From NCBI RefSeq assembly GCF_046119375.1, contig NW_027362769.1:259656001-259720000 (forward strand): a stretch of 64,000 nt of DNA. The letters run 5' to 3'. The DNA comes from Phyllobates terribilis. Its lineage: Eukaryota. The number at the start of each line of letters is the position of its first letter. The stretch's first letter is position 1. The position numbers and the translations under genes were made by a program. Positions 12,391 through 40,395 of this stretch are shown here, piece after piece. The notes under the pieces were generated by a model. It searched no databases. It saw nothing but the letters and a program-made list of their open reading frames with translations, and was not told the origin of the DNA.

Positions 12391-15300
12391 ATGAGTGGAA
12401 AAAGGCCTGCTGCTGATGGAAAGGGGAATAGGCGTGTTGGGAAGGGGAAAAAAGATTGTGTCTGTGGGGTAGGTGTTAAAGCAACAGTAACATCTGCAGA
12501 AGAAAGACCATCTTCCAGCCAAACTAAAATGTCTACTTCTTTTAGCGGACAATGTGATAAGATCCCTTTCTTACGGCCATGCCAATCGCTACAAATTCCA
12601 GATGAGGCACAAAAACAGCAGGTGCTTCAACGGATATCAAGTGCTCCTTTAAGTGGGCTCTCCTCCACATCAACTTCAACATCACAAATACTCCAGTCCT
12701 CAAAGGTGTCACCCCAATCGCACTTGCTTCCTCACAGCTCCCAAATCTCCAGCTGCCCGTCTGAGTATGAGGTAGAACAGATGGTTGAGTCTGCAGAGCT
12801 GTTTACTCATACTATAGCCTGGGAATCAGAGGTCGACTCCAGCGCTTCTGTGAATCCAGACGAGGAAATGATCTGCACTGATGCCCAGAATCTTTATGAG
12901 TCGGATCCAGGACCAGACGCAGAAGGTTCTGACCATAATGTAGACCCTCATTCCCAAACTGTAACTCCTGTTGGTGGAGACAATGAGGAAGACGATGATG
13001 AGACTCAAATACCTGATTGGAGCGACAACTTTAGTTTTTTGTCAAGGCAGGAACAGGTTGGCTCTGAGGACGACGGGTGTGATAACGCACAGGGTGATGA
13101 TGATGAGGTTGGAGATCCCACTTACTGTCAACCCACAGTCAGCCAAGAGATGAGGTCAGCAGAGGAGGTGGAGGAAGATGCTAGTGACGACGAGGTCAGG
13201 TTGCGCCTTCCTGGACAGAGACGTAGTACTGGAAGCACGTCAACAACTGCATCCTCAAACACAACTCTGCCTCTCACCACAAGTCGTGGTGGCTCTTCAG
13301 GTCGCATGGGTGCTAAGCCTTGCATAGCCTGGGCATTTTTTCAGATCGATAAAGATGACCCAACTCGTGTTATCTGTAACATTTGTCAGCAAAAGCTAAG
13401 TAGAGGCCAAAAAATACATAGTTTGAGTACTTCATGCATGAACCGGCACATGGACATGAAGCATAAGTTGCAGTGGGAAGCACAGTGTGCTACAATGCGG
13501 CCTAGCCGGCCGGGCCAACCACCGTCTGACATATCTTGTGCATCCGCGGCCTCTTCATCCTCTGTGACTGGGGGGACAGCAGTCACACCTGTTTTGGGGC
13601 GCAGACCTGCCACCTCTTTACCCGCAACAGCCAGCGTGATTGGCAGGTCATCATTTTCTTTGGAGGTGGTAACACCAGCTGGTGTTGAGCGCTGTCCGAC
13701 ATCGATAGCACCACCTTTGGATCAAGGCAACCTAACATGTCCGCCTGCATCTTCCTCACAGACCGGCAGTTTGCCGGGGACACCCTTATCAACCCCGTCT
13801 AAGCACAATAGCCAGCCCTCGGTCCCTCAGATGTGGACAAGTAAAAGACCATTTCCTCCTAGCCATGAGAAAGCTAAGAGGTTGAATTTCACCATCTGCA
13901 AGCTCTTGGCTACAGAAATGCTGCCTTTCCGCCTGGTGGACACAGAGGATTTTCGAGACCTTATGTCCGTCGCAGTGCCCCAGTACCAGATGCCCAGTCG
14001 GCACTACTTCTCAAAGAAAGGTGTGCCTGCGCTCCACCAGCATGTCACACACAACATCACCGCTTCTTTGAGAAACTCTGTGTGTGACAGGGTGCATTTC
14101 ACCACAGACACTTGGACGAGTAGGCATGGACAGGGGCGTTACATGTCGCTGACTGGGCACTGGGTAACTATGGTGACAGCAGGACAAGGGGCTGCTGTCC
14201 AAGTCTTGCCGTCCCCACGAGTTGTGCGTCAATCCTCTTTATGTCAAAGTTCCTCCACTGCTTCTGCCTCCTCAACCTCCTCTCGGTCTTCCACCTGCAC
14301 CCAAAGCCTGTCTGGTCATGCCACAAGCTTTCTAGCTGCGCAGAAGGGATCCTGCACACCTCCTTACTATGCTGGCAGTAGGGCTCAACGTCATCAGGTG
14401 GTTTTTACTTTGAAATGTCTGGGAAATGTGAGTCACACAGCTGAGGAGTTGTGGTCAGCTCTGGAGAACCAATTTCATGAATGGTTGTCTCCACTGGACC
14501 TGAAACCAGGGAAGGCCGTGTGCGACAATGCTGCAAACCTGGGTGCGGCCCTTCGCCGGGGCAATGTCACACACGTGCCTTGTATGGCTCACGTGTTGAA
14601 CCTGGTTGTCCAGCAATTTTTAGCCCACTATCCCAGACTAGATGGCCTTCTGCAGAGGGCACGGTCGCTGTGTGCTCACTTCCGCCGTTCGCATCCCGCA
14701 GCTCAGCGACTTACATCTCTACAGAAGTCGTTGGGCCTGCCACTTCACCGGCTAAAATGCGATGTGCCTACCCGGTGGAATTCAACTCTGGACATGTTGC
14801 AGCGACTGTGGCAGCACCGACAAGCCCTGGTGCAATACGTTCTGACGTATAGCCTGGGCCAACGAGATCCAGAGGTGGGTCAAATCACGCTGGAGGAGTG
14901 GTCTCAGATCAGGGACCTATGCACCCTTCTGCACAGTTTTGAAATGGCGACGAAGATGTTTAGTGCTGACGATGCCATTATCAGCATGACTATTCCGGTG
15001 ATTTACATGCTGGAGCACATGTTAAACAGAATTCGGAGTCAGGTGGTGGCACAAGAGGAGGTGGAGGAAGTAGAGGAGGAGGAGTTGTATGCGGAAGGGC
15101 TAACATCTGCAAGGTCCAGACGGTCGGCAGCACCAAGGCGGCAGGCATGTGAGGGTGGGGGAGATGGTTTTACCAGGGCGCATGGTAGCAGCCAAACTAG
15201 TGAGGAAGGTGCTTGAACCCAGGAAGAAGTGGAGGACAAACTGATGGAAGACTCATCAGATGAGGGAGACCTTGATCACATTTCTGTTGTGCGAGGTTGG

Positions 15301-27559: not shown

Positions 27560-30500
27560 CTAGCTTTTACCCGCGGCTTCGCTCGCGTGGAAGTTTCGTG
27601 ACAGATCATTTTAATGGTAAAAAAAAATAATCGTAATAGTAAAAAAAAATAATCTTAATAGTAAAAAAAAATAATCTTATTTAGTTACTCGTACATCCAA
27701 AATTTCAGATGTCTAACTTCAAAACTGACGGATTCCATACAATCTTTGAACCCCTATAATATTAAGAGGGAAACTCTTGAGGGTGGAATTATCAAAATTC
27801 CTTTCTTAGTGCTCATTTAAGCTATAATAGAACTTATCTGCAAATTTCAAGATGCTAAGTTCAGTGGTTTCGGCTGTGCGTTGACCGCTAGGTGTGTCAG
27901 TTAATCAGGTTTACAGTTTTATATATTCTTCGCCTGTATGGTGTGTTTATAAAAAGTAGCCCTATGTCCTTCCCCAGGCTTGAAATTATCCATATCAAAT
28001 TTCATCACAAACGGATTACTAAACACTGATTAATAAACAGGACGGACTGAAGTTACTTGCGTTTAATATTGTTCGTGTTAGTAAAGAATTAGTATGTAAT
28101 TGAAATAATGGACATCCGCAGGTAATTTATCTATGTGTTTTTACTGCAATATACTCCTGTAAACTATGTTATTTGATTTCTTTCGTTCAGCGAAAATATG
28201 TAGATTTTGCGATTTAGAAACACGTGAGCAAGCTACGTATAGCTGACCGTGGGAAAAACAGGGCGTGCCTAAATGTATCCCCGCTACCTTCAAAGTTTGC
28301 CCTTGCGATTTATTGATGGTCATTGAAAATGCAACTTTAAGTGGGAACTGCAAACGTTTGAAATTAAAGGGTAAGTTATTGGGTAATATTGGTATAAGAA
28401 TATTTTCACCCTTAGCTTCTCCAGTTAAAATTGTGGCCTTTACAATGTGCCTGCCTAGTTCAGTGACTCGCAGTCTAGTGCCATTACATAATCTTGGGGC
28501 GTCCAAGTTGCGCATTAACAAAACGGGTATACCGACCTTTAATTCGAGCTTATGAGATGGGACCCCGGATAGCTCCAAAGAGTTAAGAAACTCCACGGGG
28601 TAGCTCGTACAGTCTTCAGATGACATGACTGTGTCGATAGAGTTGTAGGTTGTTGCATCGCTGGTTACTTGGTCCAAGATAATTTTATTGATTTTCGCAA
28701 CTGTTTCATTTCTTGGTGCTAGTATAGTTCTTTCACATAGCCAATTTTCTTCGTGGATGTTTTGTTGCAAATTTGGAAAAACTTGAGTAATAAGTGCGTC
28801 TTCCGAATCCACAACATGACAAAATTGGTTAGTGAATAGAACCATACCTTCTTCGTCAGTTTCGATTCGACCTTCACCGATCTCGAGCAGTTTCTCAACG
28901 TACGCGCCCGACTCTAGATCACAGAATAACTGGACACGCATGTTGGTGGTGAGGTGCAGCTTTTCAACTTTGGTCCATAAATATGAGTATTTCAGAGATG
29001 CATTAATTTCGTCTGCTGCAGTGCCTCGCTCGATGACAGGCAAAGTTTGCCTAAAGTCCCCAGCCAATAAAACAACCACACCACCCATTATTGTTTGTTT
29101 ACTGTGTAAGTCTTGTAGACAACGATCAAGAGCTTCGATGGCGCATTTGTGTGACATTGTGCACTCGTCCCACACGATTAGTTTGCACTGTTGCAACAGG
29201 AGGCCACGGGCGCTGCTCTTGCTGATATTACACAATGGGGTTTCTTCGTTTACCAGATTAAGAGGTAATTTAAAGACTGAATGTGCCGTCCGTCCACCGC
29301 TTAGCAATCTTGCAGCAATTCCAGAGGAAGCCACAGCTAATGCAACGTTATGACCGCTACGAATTTTTGCTAAAAGTAAATTAAGCAAGAAAGTTTTTCC
29401 TGTACCACCCGGGGCATCAAGGAAAAAAAGTCCGCCTTCACCATTCTCAACTCGTCCTACTATTTTGTGATAAATCTCTCTTTGATCAGGTAGCAAACGT
29501 GGCTCAGTTTCGCAAACGTGAGCGTCTAACTGGGTGGTATCATAGCTTAGCTCTTTTATCAACTCGTTCGACAGCTCTCCTCTACGCCGCTGTGAGGGTA
29601 GACCAAAATCGGACAATTTCTTTCCAGAAATTATTAATATTTTGTCCTCGATAAGCCCCAACGCCTCATTGAAACAGAGATCATCGTTAACGTGATCCAT
29701 TCTTTCAAATCTGTGCATGATATCCTCTGATAACGCAGTTTTATACTTGTGCCAGAGTTGTAGAGGATTGGATAAACCGCAAGTGCATATCAATATGGCA
29801 AACAGCTCTCTTATTTGCGCCGGGGAGCGACATAGCACGGCCTCTTCTAAGGTGGTATCCCAGTGGTTATCATCTTCCAACAACCCCATCTTCTCACACA
29901 CCTGCCGAAAAGTTGCAAGTTCTTGACCTTCAAATGTTTTTAAATCCGAGAAGTTGGTTGGACCCCTTATTACATTCAGCAGCATACGCAAGCAATAACA
30001 TTCAAAATTGATAACGTGCACCGTGTAAATGCGACCTAGAGCGTCTCCTGCCTTCACACCTGGCCAGCCATCGACAGGTGTTCCTTGTAAATGACGTTTC
30101 CATTGCTTCCGTGCCACATTCCAAGTATAGTAGCGAGGCACGTCAATGTAAAGTAATGTTTTTGCAAACGTATCACTTTGGCACAACAGGAAAAATGCAG
30201 TTAGTGTAGTTTTAGGTGGTGCTTCTAATCTCTCTCTAAAATTATTTTCCGTAAAGTAAACCCTCTCGCCATTGGGTAAATGAATCGCGAGATGAGTGAC
30301 GGTTGGGTGTCTCTCGTGCAGAGGCAGACCTAAGATCCGCCACGCTGCTTCGTTACTACTAACATATCGGCCAGTTCTAAAGGTCTGCACCTCATCTCTT
30401 GGATCAATGTTAACATTCCCTTGCTGGCGGATGTTAAAAATAGCCTGGTCGCTACCCTTATTAATATATTTTCAAATATATTTTATCGCCTGTACCGTAT

Positions 30501-33500
30501 TACAGAACTCTACATTTAAATGAGAATTAAAATTTTTTGATAAGAGTGGAGAATATGGGACCACCCAGCTATTGTCCACCAATATTTCCTGTGTTCCTCT
30601 ACGGGTTTTTATAATCGTCGTGCGTCCACCATTCTCTGGTGCTCTGCGCCTGTACAAAGGATAACCTTTGTCATTGGTTTGAGTATCTTTTAAAAGCTTC
30701 CTCGGATATTTTTTGGTACATTTTCCTCCTTCATGCATGGCGATGAAGAATTGAATGTACCACATGGCCCGTGAATCATATTCTTTGTCACTGTATCATA
30801 GAGCTTTTGATCGGTTTCTGGGTTTGGTATCTCAGCACATATGATTTCGTCAATTTGGTTCCGATGCAATTTTTCCTTTAACCACAGCAGTAAGTGCACA
30901 TGAGGCAAACCTCGCTTTTGCCACTCGATCGAGTACATGAAGCATTGCATATCACCAAATATGTTACCTTTTGTAAGTAGAGCTACCAACTTCTGTACTT
31001 TTATTCTAAATACTCGGGCTGTTAAGTCATGTCTGTCCGTTGAATTTTGACCAGCCATAAGCTCTTTGGTGATTTCTGGCCAAGCGGGGTTGCAAGTCAT
31101 TGTAATAAATAAATCAGGCCTCCCATAATTACGTACGTATGTGAACGCATCTTGTCTGTATTCGTGTAGGTATCTGGGGCTATTTACAAATGATGACGGG
31201 AGAATCACCATCTGACCTAAGTTATTTGGATCCAAATCCGCATCATTTCTTATTGCATCTTGCAAGTGAATATAATTTTCTGCGCGCAGTTTTTTTTTAT
31301 TTAAAGAAATGAACCTTAAGCGCTCACTTTCCATCTTTACATACATGTCGACCAGAAACTGATGAAGTAGGAGCCTACACTTAAGCATCAAATTAAAATC
31401 GCAGCGACGGAGCATCAAGTGAAAGGCATAAAAATCTTTGCAGGACACCTTTTTGCTTGGCATTGCTTGTTTGGTAATTGAATTTATCTGAGGAATATCA
31501 ATGCTGTACCCCTCTTGTCCTTTCCAAAAAATTATTGGGTACTCGAGAGCGTCATAGAATCTATGTGTATCGGGAACCCTAGTGAGCATGCCATCGCACG
31601 GCTGCACAACGATGTCCCGAGACATAGTTTGTTTGCTACTAACTATTACAGCAGCTATTTCATTTGTAGTAGAGGCATTGAATCGTCTCTCATGTTGACC
31701 ACGTGGTACACGGTCTGGGTGAATCACTACTTTGAAATGATCGTCATTGATCATTCTGTCTCTAGCCAATTTAAATTCATGCACCAAAATGTTGTGGTCG
31801 TGAAGTACTCGTTGTAATTTTTTAACTATGTTTCTATCTACGCTTTGCAAGCACTCAGTACGCCTGTTAATTTGTTCTTCTTCGTCACCTATGAAATAAA
31901 CTTGTAAAAATTGTGGTTGCGAAATGGACGTAGGAATTAAAGAACCGATACGGTGGTATACTTGTCCTTGAATTGTAAAGGTCGGGCAAAACCCTGGCAT
32001 TGAGACAATTTGATCTGCTCCAAAAGACGTCATATGAAAGCACATGTTGTATTTTCTTATATTATTTAGAAAAAGGCGAGATTCATCAGTTTCATTAGAG
32101 AAAAGCTCTTTTAAAGGTTGAACTGGCTCGTCTATATAAGGAAGAGCTACTTTCCCGCTCAAACAACACATACCTGCTGCTTCCTCTTTCCACTTAAGAG
32201 CTCCGCAATATTTGCAATCTATGGTCATTGCTTCTATTTTTATAAGCTTGTGAGTTTCATAACCAAGAGTCTCATCATACTCAAATGCAGCTTTATTAAA
32301 CAATATCCATGTATTTCTTGTAAATGTTTGACGTCGCTGTGCAGCCCTTTCAGCAACAGTGCGTCTGCGAGATTCGGCCATTTCATAAGTTTCAGTGGCT
32401 CTTTGGGACGCCATGTAAGTCGCTTGCTGCTGACGTCGAGCTTGGGACTGTTCTTGAGTTTCAGCAGCCCGTTGAGACGCCAGATACTCCGCATGCTGTT
32501 CACGTCGGGCTTGGGACTGTTCTTGAGTTTCAGCAGCCCGTTGAGATGCCAAAAACTCCGCATTCCGTTCACGTCAGGCTTGGGATTGTTCTGGAGTCTC
32601 TGCAGCTCTATGTGCCGCACAACGCACCGCCTGCTCAAGCCTTCGTTGCTTGGCTTGTTGAGACGTCTCATCACGTCTAATTATTTTCATAGCTCGGGCT
32701 TTATTAGAGCTTTGCGAAATGTTAGACTTACGCTTTCGTGGCATTTTTATAAGTACTAATTACAAAATAGGTACTTAGTAAAGTTCAAACAAAATACTAA
32801 AACAATCTAATTAGTTATATTACGATCGCTGTACAGACGATATCAGTTGTATATGACTGGTCTATGAGGAGCAGGTGTGGCGCGGTTACCCATAGCAACC
32901 ATTCCCAGTGCTCTGTGGGAGCGGAGAGCAGCCTGCTGGTGCTGTGGGTGACATGCTGCGCTGCACACACACAGGGCTGTGTTGCACACAGGAGGGGAGG
33001 ACGCCATTTGTGTAGCGCTGCTGCCGGTGCTGTCAGGCTGCAGTGTGTGCATCCTCCATGGAGAAGCGCTCAGGTTACTGTCCCTCCCCGTGTGTGAGTC
33101 ACTTCCCCTCCACCCAGGTGAGGCGCTCGGAACTTTCCCGGCTGCAGCAGCTGGCGCAGGTGAGCGCATGTTTTATTATACGGTGTTATGTGGAGGGACA
33201 ATGGCAGCGGGGACCCCCTGTGTGAGTACAATGACGGCCCGGTGCCCCTGGGCAACCTGCAGGAGGAAGCCTCACACTCCCCCCGGGCTGTGGGCGCGGG
33301 CAGGCCGTGCTGGGACGTGTAGTTCCCTAGTAACCTGTTCCTGACATATGAGCTGTTTTCTGGGCTATTTTTTTTTATTTTTTTTTTTTAAGTCTGAGAA
33401 AATGTCATAAATTATCCTTCTCCCTTCAGATGTTTCCAGAGTGTAATGTATCAGGGTGAGCTCATGACTGACAGCTGCCAAAGTTTCTAGGAAATGTCAG

Positions 33501-34158
33501 CCCCTGGGGGTCGTGTGTGAACCCCCTGTGCCACACTTGTACCTGGCCACGGTATATGATCACCCCTGTATTCCGACTGTGGACAGGCGGCAACTGTGAC
33601 CTCACTATACAATGATCCACTATGGGCAAATGATTGTATTATCAATCTCTTCTGACTGCTGTAAATCAGCCATTTAAATATCACCTGTGTATTTGTGTAT
33701 ATAAGAGTTTGATAAATATACTAAAAAGTTTGATAAATATACTAAAATGTGCATTGTAAAATTGTAAAATAGTATCTAATTTAATTAAATTTATGGTTCA
33801 CAATTTAGGTCATAGTGGCTTCCACATAAAAAGTAGATATATGCTGTCGCGGACTTTTATTTAGAACTATTCAAGACAAACAATTCTACGGTACATCATC
33901 TTTGTGTAACTCCAACGGTTTAGGCAGCGTATGCCAAGATAGCTCTCAGAGGCAAGATTTTTTTCCGACTTAATTGACATGTATCGTTATATTACGACCA
34001 AAATTACATAAAATCATTACAAATTGTAGGCTATATGTTATTCCGATGTATAATCTATATTACTGTAAAGTTTCATGCAAATCCGTCCAGTAGTTTTTTC
34101 GTGAAAAAGTAACAAACATACATACTCACAAACTTTCGCATTTATAATATTAGTAGGA
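27560..34158 (-). mobile_element. Autonomous-type Helitron, 6.6 kb, complete ends
   Basis: 5' end A|TCCTACTAATATTATAAATGCGAAAG at 34158. 3' hairpin CCACGCG...CGCGGG followed by CTAG|T at 27560. Inserted in an AT dinucleotide. Confidence 0.95.
28141..32744 (-). pseudogene. Helitron Rep-PIF1 helicase, about 1530 codons, intronless, with 2 stops (32574-32576, 30472-30474) and 1 frameshift (about 30725)
   Basis: Rep motifs PDLFITMTCNP, EWQKRGLPHVH and YPLYRRR. Helicase motifs GGTGKT, WDEC, GDFRQ, NGTRL, TINKSQG and GQLYVACSR. Confidence 0.95.
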
Positions 34159-37100
34159 TTTGACATTTCATCACCACTACACATTTATTTATATTTTCCT
34201 TTTAAGATATACATTTTACACCAATATTGTTATTAGTGTCAAACAGCCATGTTGCTCAAACAAAAGACATTCCAAAAATAATCATAATTTAGACATAATA
34301 GCAGGAATCCATATCTATCATCACACTAAAAGGGGATCCAGAATCTTTTTTATTTTTATTTTTTTTAATTTTACTCTCATTCAATTCATGATTTCAATTA
34401 CAACGACTATTACTACAAAACCAGCCAGGCTAAATTATTAATCAACCCTGATACTACAGAAAGGATGAAAACTTAAAACCCTCATTAAAGCCGTTCGGGC
34501 AGCGAGATTTCAGCCTGTATATCCAGCGACACTCTTCTTGCAGGAGTGCTTTATCCAAATTCCCTTTTCTTGGTCCCAGGGTGATAAGCCTAATCCCCCA
34601 TACAATGAAATTTAGGGGTTCATGCCTATGAGTGTTCCTCATGTGCACCGACAAAGGAGTATCTACTTCCGTATTTTTTGAGCTAATATGATTTGAAATT
34701 CTTCTCCGCAACTCCTGTATTGTTTTACCAATGTACAATTTCGGGCATGGGCACCTTATAGCATATACTACCCCTCTAGTTCTACAGTTAATATCATCCA
34801 TGATGAAAAACTTCTTGTTATCAACTGAATTAATAAACTCCATCATTTTCCGAAGTAACTTACAGAAGGAACAGGGACCACATGTTTGTGACCCTCTTGT
34901 TCTTCTGTCTGAGCTAGACCGGCTATTAGGTGGGGTAAAAATGCTCAGATATTCACGTAATTTTTCCCCCTTCGATATGTTACTCTGGGGTTAACTCCAA
35001 TGACATCCCTCAAATCAGGGTAGGCTCTCAAAATTGACCAATATTTACGTAGAGTATTATACATACCATGTGCTCATTCATCATATGTCCCTATAAATCT
35101 AATTAAGGGATCACATGGTTTATCACCCGATTTGTCCAATAGCGCATCTCTCTCAGACAATTTTGCCCTGTTGAAGGCCTTATGCAAAATTTTCTTTGAA
35201 TAGCCCCTTGCAGTAAACCTTTGAAATAGATTTCTACTTTTTACTACCAAATAAGGCATCATTTGAACAATTACGCCTTGCCCGCAGATACTGTCCGACC
35301 AGTATTCCAGCCATTAAGGATGGAGGGTGCCAGGTTTCCCAATGCAATAAATTGTTCGTGGAAGTCGGCTTCCTATAAATATCAGTATGGATGTTTCCCT
35401 CTCCATCAAAAGATATGGTTAGGTCCAAAAAGTTTGGCTTGTAACCAATTTCCTTTGTAAAATGCATACCAATTTTGTTATTGTTAAGGATAGATACAAA
35501 ATCAGAAAATAACCGTGCTTCACCATCCCATAAAATGAAAACGTCATTGATGTATCTACCCCAAAATAAAATGTGACTCGTCTAAAGGGATAAATCCTCA
35601 CATAAAACGTGCACATCTTCCCACTGCCCCAAAAATAAGTTAGATAAAGTGGGTACACATGAAGTATCCATCGCGGTACCCCTTATCTGATGATAGAAGG
35701 TACCGCTAAAGGTAAAATAATTGTACGTAAGGACAAAGCTTAATAGAGAATAAAGAAAATCAGTATGTGCCTTAAACTGCCTTCTCTTGGCCGAAGAAGA
35801 TGTTTGACAGCTGCAATGCCTAAACCATGATCAATGTTGCTATAGAATGCCTCTGTATCCAAGCTCGTGAGGATTGTAGTCTCAGAGACATTTAAGCCCC
35901 TCAGTTTCAAGACCATGTCCTTAGCATCTCGGATGAATGATGGTGAAGTATTTACAAATGGGGCCAATAACTCATCTAGGTACTGACTGGCACCCTCTGT
36001 CAAGGAATTATTCCGGGAAACAATAGGCCTCCCATGTATCGGAAAGATCTTTCTATGGACCTTGGGCAAGGCTTAAAAGGTTGCGATGGTGGGCTGGGGA
36101 TTAAAAATATACTTAAACTCATCTTCAGACAGTAGATTGTTTCTTCTAGCTTCCCTTAACAGGGTAGATAGTTCCTTCAAATAGAGCTCGGTGGGATCCG
36201 ACCTCAGAATGGTATATGTTTTTCTATCTCCCAATAGATCTTTCACCATTCTAGTGCAATCTAACACATCCATAAGGACAATGTTGCCCCCCTTATCGGA
36301 GGGCTTTATAGCTAACTCTTTAGTTCCTTTCTCTCTACTACTCACAGAAACCTTGCTGATCTCCTCCTCTACCATAGTGACAAAAGTGTTAATGTTGTGG
36401 TATTGGGAGAAATTTGTGGTGTTTTTACTCTTTTGTTTGAGTGAGGAGAAGGGTGGGGATATATCAGGTGGATCAACCTCCAACTCTTCCAGGACTTGTA
36501 TTGCCTCCATCTCTCGCCTATTAGTCTCCATCCCATCTCTGTTCTTAATAGCATGATATTTATGAAGTCTTAACTTCCAGGCGAACAGATTCAAATCTTT
36601 AGTCCAACTGAAGGGATCAAAACCCGGAGTTGGAGTGAAAGATAAACCCCTTTTGATAAGCAATACATGTGTCTCATTCAGTGTTTGGGAAGATAAATTA
36701 AAGATCTGTAGGTCCGTCCCCATCTTATAATCACCACCATCTACGACGGGTTCAGGTTCCCTAAAAAAGACGGTTGCCGAGTCAAACTGATACTTGGCAT
36801 TGGGGTATTTACTAAGCCACTGCCCACGAGTGATGATGTCGATGTTGGTATATGTATACTTGGGGATAATATTGGCGCTGTCAATTGGCCCATATTCATT
36901 GTGCCCACTGCTTGAGAGGCAGTCATATTGTCAAAAAGGGAAGGTATAGTCTGCTGTGTGGGTTCCGTTCTCACACCCACAGTAGCGGGTAATAAGGAGG
37001 ATAAATGCCCATCTACATGAATCTGTGTATTTCTTTTGGGACGTATATTGTCTCCCTGCATATTTGTCCATGATTTAAAGGGGAAATTTTTCTTTTGTCT

Positions 37101-39596: not shown

Positions 39597-40395
39597 TATC
39601 AGGGTTGATTAATAATTTAGCCTGGCTGGTTTTGTAGTAATAGCCGTTATAATTGAAATCATGAATTGAATGAGAGTAAAATGAAATAAATAAAATAAAA
39701 AGGGTTCTGGATCCCCTTTTAGTGTGATGATAGGTATGGATTCCTGCCATTATGTCTAAATTGTGATTATTTTTGGAATATCTTTTGTTTGAGCAACATG
39801 GCTGTTTGACACTAATAAAAATATTGGTGTAAAATGTATGTATTAAAATGAAAATATAAATAAATGTGTTGAGGTGATGAAAGGTCAAATGATTTATAAT
39901 ATAAAGCCAATAGGAAAATATAACAGCAGAAATGAATGAGAGTAATAATATTCTGGATATGTCAATATAAAATATACTGGACTATACCAGTCAAGAATAC
40001 ATCAGAGTGCAGAAATGAATGAGGGTAATGATATCCTGGATATACACTGAAATACACGGTCTAGAACACATCAGAGTGTACATCAGAGTGCAGAAATGAA
40101 TGAGGGTAATAATATCCTGCACATATCAATACAGAATATACTGGAATACATCTGTTGAGAATACTTCAGAGTTGGATGAAATATGGAGATTTATTCCCCC
40201 GAGTAAGTGTAATAATAATGGCTGTATATATTTGCTGAATATGTTATACTCAGATGGTCATACAACAATGGGCCCATTGTATAATAATTTGAGAAACGCT
40301 TATGTAGTGTAAGTGAATTTATTAGCTCTGACATGCGCACTGACTGCAGTTGGAGGTAGCGGTGATGGGCATGCGCGGTTGCGCCGGAGTGGAAG

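Follow-up and report, generated by a model that had tools for sequence, protein, structure and literature searches.

Structure and insertion site of the Helitron

The 64,000-nucleotide stretch of DNA analysed here (positions 259,656,001 to 259,720,000 of contig NW_027362769.1, hereafter the window) contains a complete Helitron of the autonomous kind on the minus strand at 27560-34158, which is 6599 bp long and carries a RepHel gene coding for a Rep nuclease and a Pif1-type helicase. Position 34158 is the 5' T of the TC start and position 27560 the last G of the terminal CTAG, so that the complete TC and hairpin-CTAG ends claimed in a preliminary description of the window now have exact coordinates. 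The 5' end reads TCCTACTAATATT. The termini are of the Helitron1 type, with TCCTAC... at the 5' end and ...AAAAGCTAG at the 3' end, and fit the TC/CTRR pattern without terminal inverted repeats. The left terminal sequence (LTS) and a conserved leader together occupy 33727-34158 on the minus strand, as judged from matches to moth copies and to the 5' ends of the Hel-2 family, and the first 30 nt are of the Hel-2 type. The right terminal sequence (RTS; 27560-27590, minus strand) consists of an 8-bp hairpin at 27570-27590, a spacer, and CTAG at 27560-27563. The palindrome, CC-A-CGCG-A-GC GAA GC-CGCG-GG, gives the 8-bp stem, is followed by TAAAAGCTAG, and is kept in published Hel-2 copies; the GC-rich hairpin is positioned as in canonical Helitrons, with 10 nt between it and the 3' end, and its fold energy is no better than that of shuffled sequences (z = -0.55). 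All structural tests for a canonical Helitron1-type element were passed, with RepHel broken at three places. Just inside the 3' end, at 27613-27680, there are three tandem units of about 22 nt, made up of an A run and TAATC(G/T)TAATAGT.

The sequence flanking the Helitron comes from the 3' tail of a Penelope-like element, two copies of which stand in the window in inverted orientation. When the Helitron is deleted in silico, the joined flanks align with the Penelope paralogue without gaps over the junction and are identical at 408 of 435 positions (94%). The junction falls between 39889 and 39890, in the unfilled paralogous target site GTCAAA/TGATTT (39884-39895, plus strand) on the other arm of the inverted pair. 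The insertion thus lies precisely at an A/T boundary and did not duplicate the target site, which agrees with the clean insertion into a Penelope 3' tail, with an uninterrupted version elsewhere in the window, that had been described earlier. With this exact insertion signature, a chimeric join can be ruled out. The window is rich in transposons and also contains, at 12391-15216, an intact open reading frame (ORF) of 941 amino acids with a BED zinc finger, which may code for a hAT-like transposase or be a domesticated gene. The close matches of this ORF are fragments only, fused into gene models of Ranitomeya imitator and Phyllobates terribilis at 75-82% identity, and because it closely matches these two species alone, the host is taken to be a dendrobatid-like frog. 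The gap-free flank alignment and the frog matches of the ORF bear out the earlier claim that the element is integrated and does not come from a contaminating contig; the evidence for integration in a frog genome is solid.

The RepHel gene

RepHel is intronless, has about 1,530 codons on the minus strand, and is read as four open pieces; the lesions that separate them number exactly three, of which two are stops and one is a frameshift. Piece 1 (32577-32744, ATG at 32744-32742) codes for 56 amino acids with a basic N-terminus. It is followed by lesion 1 (32574-32576), an in-frame stop within the third 69-nt coding repeat; repeat finding placed three tandem 69-nt units, coding for 23-aa repeats in the N-terminal region, at 32368-32574, and the moth copies align to this region as staggered repeated matches. 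Piece 2 (30693-32573, 627 aa) contains the Rep nuclease domain, with the HUH motif at about 30894-30911. Lesion 2 (30726-30727) is a one-base frameshift, with the frame changing between 30795 and 30693. Piece 3 (30475-30795, 107 aa) is meaningful from about residue 24 and ends in the first half of the catalytic two-tyrosine motif. Lesion 3 (30472-30474) is an in-frame stop that sits between both catalytic tyrosines of this motif (translation KYI*KYINKG). Piece 4 (28144-30471, 776 aa) is the Pif1-type helicase, with Walker A at about 29392-29415 and the stop codon at 28141-28143. Pfam matches on RepHel are Helitron_like_N (PF14214, 1.4e-55), PIF1 (PF05970, 5.1e-63), and Pif1_2B (2.4e-18), and besides the two-tyrosine motif the HUH motif (GLPHVHLLL), Walker A (GGTGKT), and Walker B (VWDECTM) are readable. 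The ratio of observed to expected CpG is 0.74-1.0 (about 0.9) in the RepHel gene; the flanks reach only 0.46-0.53 and the window as a whole 0.51. The preliminary description of an intronless, CpG-rich gene three lesions away from intact is accurate. In all searches the broken gene was used as separate pieces.

Relationship to lepidopteran copies and to Hel-2

The DNA around four moth proteins was compared to the frog Helitron: Amyelois transitella (L001), Danaus plexippus (L003, 5593-12812), Eumeta japonica (L004), and Epargyreus clarus (L005). These autonomous copies are annotated merely as uncharacterized or PIF1-like proteins. The frog Helitron is collinear with all four in the LTS, the start of the leader, RepHel, and the RTS. 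DNA identity to the moth copies is 80.4-82.4% in the coding sequence, over up to 4.5 kb, 75-81% over 170-430 nt in the left end and leader (Eumeta 75% over 432 nt, Danaus and Epargyreus 80-81% over 176 nt), and 88-91% in the last 32 nt. The best named protein matches of the helicase and Rep pieces are also from Lepidoptera, with identities of 80-86% for Amyelois, 74-78% for Epargyreus, 81% for Danaus, and 75-85% for Eumeta, while the RepHel proteins of frogs and lizards are 50-66% identical to that in the window, with the exception of Leptodactylus fuscus (66-78%). The moth copies are 91-99% identical among themselves across four lepidopteran families, but the frog element is about 82% identical to each; given this equal distance to all of them, the frog element is a sister sublineage whose donor is unsampled in the named data. 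The moth copies form a separate sublineage with their own leader, without the host-like segment described below, and with a 3' untranslated part much shorter than that of the frog Helitron.

Several other observations were made on the sequences in this comparison. Over 2-4 kb, the DNA identity among the Danaus, Epargyreus, and Amyelois copies is 97.8-99.3%, and the Eumeta copy is about 91-92% identical to them; such near-identity across moth and butterfly families suggests that transfer among Lepidoptera may have been recent. The Amyelois locus also contains a 165-bp non-autonomous relative. A part of the frog 3' untranslated region (27704-27893) resembles, at 69-77%, two places in the Epargyreus leader (L005, 3528-3632 and 4255-4436), which are the same sequence in opposite orientations, and this is perhaps a small moth repeat that was carried along. 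The spider Trichonephila clavipes has several RepHel fragments (P0048, P0126, P0153, and P0217), 74-88% identical to the window and inside the moth clade, that could be a prey-derived transfer or contamination. A contig from JGI metagenome 3300007153 (L006) codes for a 1097-aa Rep protein, 76% identical to that of the window and in the same clade.

Copies of Hel-2 (BmHel-2/MITE01) from moths, a wasp, bracoviruses, and a mutant of AcMNPV (baculovirus) are given in the supplement of Coates 2015 (PMC4344730). Hel-2 has the same hairpin (GCGAGCGAAGCCGCGGG), the same CTAG end, and the same insertion between A and T as the frog Helitron, and the internal blocks GGATTTG.ATGAAA.TT and ACATAGG.TAC/GTTTTTAT are alike in both. 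The first 30 nt match Hel-2 at 27/31 (P. xylostella) and 26/31 (O. nubilalis and Cotesia congregata bracovirus, CcBV), which is 84-87%, and the last 30 nt at 28/30 (CcBV), 28/31 (T. ni), and 26/31 (O. nubilalis), which is 84-93%; both ends thus reach the threshold for family membership, at least 80% identity. The Hel-2 consensus (about 250 bp, for which PMC4344730 uses a threshold of at least 65%) is split in the frog Helitron, with 60-74% identity in the 5' 95 nt, 63% in an internal unit, and 86-94% in the 3' 33 nt. The internal unit appears to be a degenerate, Hel-2-like non-autonomous element in the 3' untranslated part (27919-28073, minus strand) and contains the GTAGCC..ATGTCC and AAATTTCATC blocks. 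It aligns with a P. xylostella Hel-2 copy at 103 of 163 positions with a score of 38.5 (shuffled sequences had a mean of 16 and a maximum of 23); a BLAST self-comparison of the LTS against the 3' untranslated part of the Helitron was not significant. The likeness of the 5' end and of certain blocks to lepidopteran Helitrons, which the preliminary description had proposed, is real and is found in the Hel-2 termini and in this unit. Hel-2 has been described as about 250 bp and non-coding (PMC4344730), whereas the frog Helitron is 6.6 kb long, has RepHel, is of the autonomous-partner type, and resides in a vertebrate. On sequence grounds it is an autonomous-type, vertebrate-resident relative of Hel-2.

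Two other known families were considered and rejected. Han et al. 2019 (PMC6544945) reported Hel1 from Lepidoptera and from Nephila/Trichonephila clavipes and described more than one horizontal transfer of it. The 3' end of Hel1 is related to that of the frog Helitron (23/30, with a common GCGAAGCCGCGGG core), but the first 30 nt match Pgra_Hel1Aa at only 20/35, below the 80% criterion for 5' ends in the same study. Heli1Xen1 was reported by Li and Pollet 2025 (PMC12001565) from Xenopus, toads, lizards, and bichirs, with a transfer dated to a few million years before present. It differs from the ends in the window in its TATATAAA LTS block and its CCCGTTA...TAACGGG RTS hairpin, and has been reported among vertebrates only, without a link to arthropods (PMC12001565). 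It shares with the frog element a young autonomous Helitron1 type in amphibians, horizontal transfer, and the capture of gene fragments at the 5' end. The patchy occurrence of Helitron families across animal phyla, including insect-vertebrate transfer (Thomas, Schaack and Pritham 2010, PMC2997563), is an event of the same kind, likened here by description alone; the word amphibian is absent from the text of that paper.

A full-text search of the literature for the terminal strings gave no match, and the strings were found in the supplements of two papers (PMC4344730 and PMC6544945); they are absent from the Lep1 and silkworm Helitron supplements. Nothing in the literature searched links Helitrons with poison frogs. 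An exhaustive search of representatives clustered at 50% identity, a set too coarse for this purpose, gave no closer full-length relative (top match 57%). Two word-index protein searches showed no close dendrobatid protein, a weak result in that the broken pieces are too short to reveal a RepHel of about 1,500 amino acids. Scans of viral contigs with the RTS pattern and the helicase found no relative in a collection that holds few insect viruses.

Copies in sequencing runs

In an index of sequencing runs, the RepHel gene is present in 20 runs. Organism A accounts for 13 runs from four studies with 54-64% of the words of the gene and for a 14th run, from a fifth study, with 48%; organisms B and C have about 50% of the words, and four further organisms or runs have 6-18%. 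Two runs with just 8-10 million contig letters still contain half of the words, which suggests a high copy number. Contigs of organisms A, B, D, and E were aligned to 28350-34349 of the window; these are Logan contigs, the depths of which are not copy numbers. The high-depth contigs of organism A differ from the window copy at 32 of 2929 positions (1.1%), and all aligned contigs of this organism are at least 90% like the window copy. For organism B, 8,090 contigs are aligned, 85-100% alike and many with internal deletions. Organisms B, C, D, and E hold copies that are 95-99% identical. In run X1 of organism A, contigs have loose ends at 29829, 32142, 32450, and 32857 that lie in tagmentation (Nextera) adapter; these are not biological ends.

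For most of the positions listed as differing, one alternative letter is common to organisms A, B, D, and E, which makes these differences peculiar to the window copy. For lesion 3, most of the family in each of the four runs carries a different letter at 30472. For lesion 2, there is one extra base in the sole covering contig of A and of E, and in a minority of the depth in B and D. Of the 39 private differences listed, nine reflect CpG decay, with TpG or CpA in the window copy at places where the family has CpG.

Replacement of the leader

A GC-rich, CpG-poor, host-like segment of about 0.9 kb (32807-33726) stands in place of the ancestral leader, as delimited by contig depth in organisms A, B, D, and E. 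The observed/expected CpG ratio of the segment is 0.45-0.70, and nothing matching it occurs in the moth loci or in the rest of the window. The runs of organisms B, D, and E have zero depth over 32950-33549, where the depth in organism A is high, and the segment and its junction with the LTS reach family-level depth in organism A only. In organism A, a contig with a depth of 287 bridges 33678-33970, from the host-like segment into the left end, where the total depth is about 313. In organisms B and E the sequence past 33727 is instead that of another, AT-rich leader, whose match to the Eumeta copy (26/29) lies immediately downstream of the left end common to both. The presence of the host-like segment in A only and of a Eumeta-like leader in B and E therefore marks it as a lineage-specific replacement of the ancestral leader, carried by most copies of organism A. 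Organism A is likely to be the species of the window, since it alone covers the host-like segment. Nearly all of its copies continue into the segment at the 5' junction, which argues for amplification within the frog lineage, and the segment is best read as host DNA that was captured and then amplified, that is, as transposition within this lineage. Within the segment, on the plus strand at 33058-33160, an ATG opens 34 codons up to a site resembling a GT splice donor; this unit, antisense to the Helitron, looks like a captured first coding exon.

The preliminary description held that the element had stayed active until recently. Here the support is indirect, from copies in organism A that differ by about 1% from the window copy and from the depth of the host-like segment. 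At the rate for pipid frogs used by Li and Pollet (3.2e-9 per site per year, PMC12001565), a divergence of 1.1% would correspond to a few million years, as an order of magnitude.

Phylogeny and divergence

In maximum-likelihood trees of the helicase and of Rep, the window is placed alongside Lepidoptera and Trichonephila in clades with a Shimodaira-Hasegawa-like approximate likelihood ratio (SH-aLRT) support of 100. In both trees these clades sit within a larger, almost wholly arthropod group, and the Helitrons of Ascaphus, Eleutherodactylus, and Anolis are distant from the window. A RepHel tree had been proposed as a check of the preliminary description, and it places the window among arthropods and away from the other frog and lizard Helitrons. 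The approximately unbiased (AU) test rejects a clade of the window and Leptodactylus (p = 0.00018) and one clade of all four vertebrate sequences (p = 4.9e-26); the groups were chosen after viewing the tree, which weakens the test of Leptodactylus more than that of vertebrate monophyly. The Leptodactylus fuscus protein (P0023) belongs to a neighbouring lineage; its partner is the fly Rhagoletis in the tree of the helicase, whereas in that of Rep it joins Choristoneura and a Logan contig. It does not group with the window element and is possibly an independent transfer between arthropods and frogs.

Compared to the Amyelois copy, dS (synonymous divergence) is 0.78-0.94 and dN (nonsynonymous divergence) is 0.10. 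The low dN relative to dS is read as purifying selection on a working transposase, and the synonymous distance as calculated is far below saturation. For comparison, the median Ks of genes between Xenopus and other vertebrate classes is 1.3-2.2 (Li and Pollet, PMC12001565). Because dS is so far below saturation, and because the non-coding ends still align at 75-93%, inheritance by vertical descent since frogs and moths diverged is untenable. It is almost certain that the frog lineage acquired the Helitron horizontally and that the element multiplied there afterwards.

Origin of the element

With a probability of about 0.78, the element belongs to a mainly lepidopteran, Hel-2-related lineage that was transferred horizontally into a dendrobatid-like frog lineage and then amplified, and of which the window copy is dead but young. 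An origin in arthropods is the parsimonious reading of the data, with the direct step from arthropod to frog suggested by the shape of the trees.

The copies may have arisen as in other Helitrons. The HUH/two-tyrosine nuclease of RepHel would nick the 5' TC end, the Pif1-type helicase would peel off one strand as far as the hairpin-CTAG stop signal, and the peeled circle would be pasted between A and T of the host. The near-identical copies in the contigs fit such replicative, rolling-circle or peel-and-paste spread. In the frog lineage, a variant with about 0.9 kb of host-like DNA in the place of the leader would have become the main form. The window copy would then have entered the Penelope 3' tail and gained about 1% of private changes, including the two stops and the frameshift, partly through CpG decay.

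Several points weigh against this account of the origin. The best named arthropod copy is only about 82% identical in DNA, so that the donor would be unsampled, and the frog element appears as sister to the sampled moth and spider sublineage and not nested inside it. The trees are unrooted, and the direction of transfer is read from the predominance of arthropods around the frog branch. Organisms B-E may all be related frogs, in which case the element would have invaded a frog clade and then spread vertically, and the data would not bear on an ongoing exchange between phyla. Of the junctions of the host-like segment, the 5' one was checked; no contig was seen to bridge the second (about 32807-32857), and the Penelope flank is covered in none of the runs. 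The transfer from arthropod to amphibian proposed earlier stands in part: the arthropod RepHel clade and the rejection of vertebrate monophyly support it, the direction comes from tree shape only, and the high-identity copy that was sought in a named insect did not appear, the best being about 82% identical in DNA with a dS of 0.8-0.9.

The transfer could also have been horizontal but indirect, the source being a parasite, a virus, or another vertebrate with an autonomous Helitron of the Hel-2 type, or the flow could have been from vertebrates to arthropods. The moderate identity of the nearest named arthropod copies is in keeping with such a route, as are the copies with 95-99% identity in at least three further organisms and the neighbouring lineage of Leptodactylus fuscus that groups with a fly. 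Hel-2 is known in baculovirus and bracovirus genomes (PMC4344730), and the exchange of Helitrons among reptiles, fishes, and amphibians has been documented (PMC12001565). However, the neighbouring branches for several nodes are all arthropod except for Leptodactylus, the termini, the leader, and the internal Hel-2-like unit all have lepidopteran counterparts, and the viral contigs scanned, few of them from insect viruses, held no relative. An indirect or reversed route is judged unlikely.

An old family inherited vertically in frogs, resembling those of insects because RepHel evolves slowly, is very improbable. Several Helitron families do occur in frogs (PMC12001565), but a dS of 0.8-0.9 to the moth copies and a non-coding leader and termini that can be aligned at 75-93% would not be expected after the split of protostomes and deuterostomes. 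Vertebrate monophyly is rejected by the AU test, the other frog Helitron proteins are only 50-66% identical, CpG is not yet depleted, and the copies are young. The least probable explanation is that insect DNA from prey or from laboratory contamination was joined to frog sequence by an error of assembly: poison frogs eat arthropods and the composition of the element is insect-like, but both junctions are exact Helitron ends at one A/T of a host repeat with an uninterrupted paralogue, a CpG-poor host-like segment lies inside the element, the window copy shows CpG decay relative to its family, and the family is found in 16 listed runs from seven studies (13 runs from four studies at half of the words or more).

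Transfer from a mainly lepidopteran lineage can be extended to a more far-reaching proposal, which is doubtful. An autonomous Hel-2-type Helitron derived from Lepidoptera may have exchanged its leader for a promoter and first-exon fragment of the host and may be active in a poison frog to this day. Some of the copies with 95-99% identity would then be from arthropods, and there would be a live exchange between arthropods and vertebrates, perhaps by way of the arthropod diet of the frogs or of a parasite or virus common to both.

Implications

Events of this kind are already on record, as Helitron transfers between insects and vertebrates (PMC2997563) and in amphibians (PMC12001565). The frog Helitron adds an autonomous, RepHel-coding relative of Hel-2, which PMC4344730 treats as non-autonomous only, and places it inside a vertebrate that eats arthropods. 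It also appears to show a Helitron swapping its own leader for host DNA before amplification. If the close copies in other organisms prove to be from arthropods, this locus would be a dated and directional example of DNA transposons crossing phyla. For genome annotation, it would represent a high-copy family in a frog that spreads a host promoter-like fragment across the genome.

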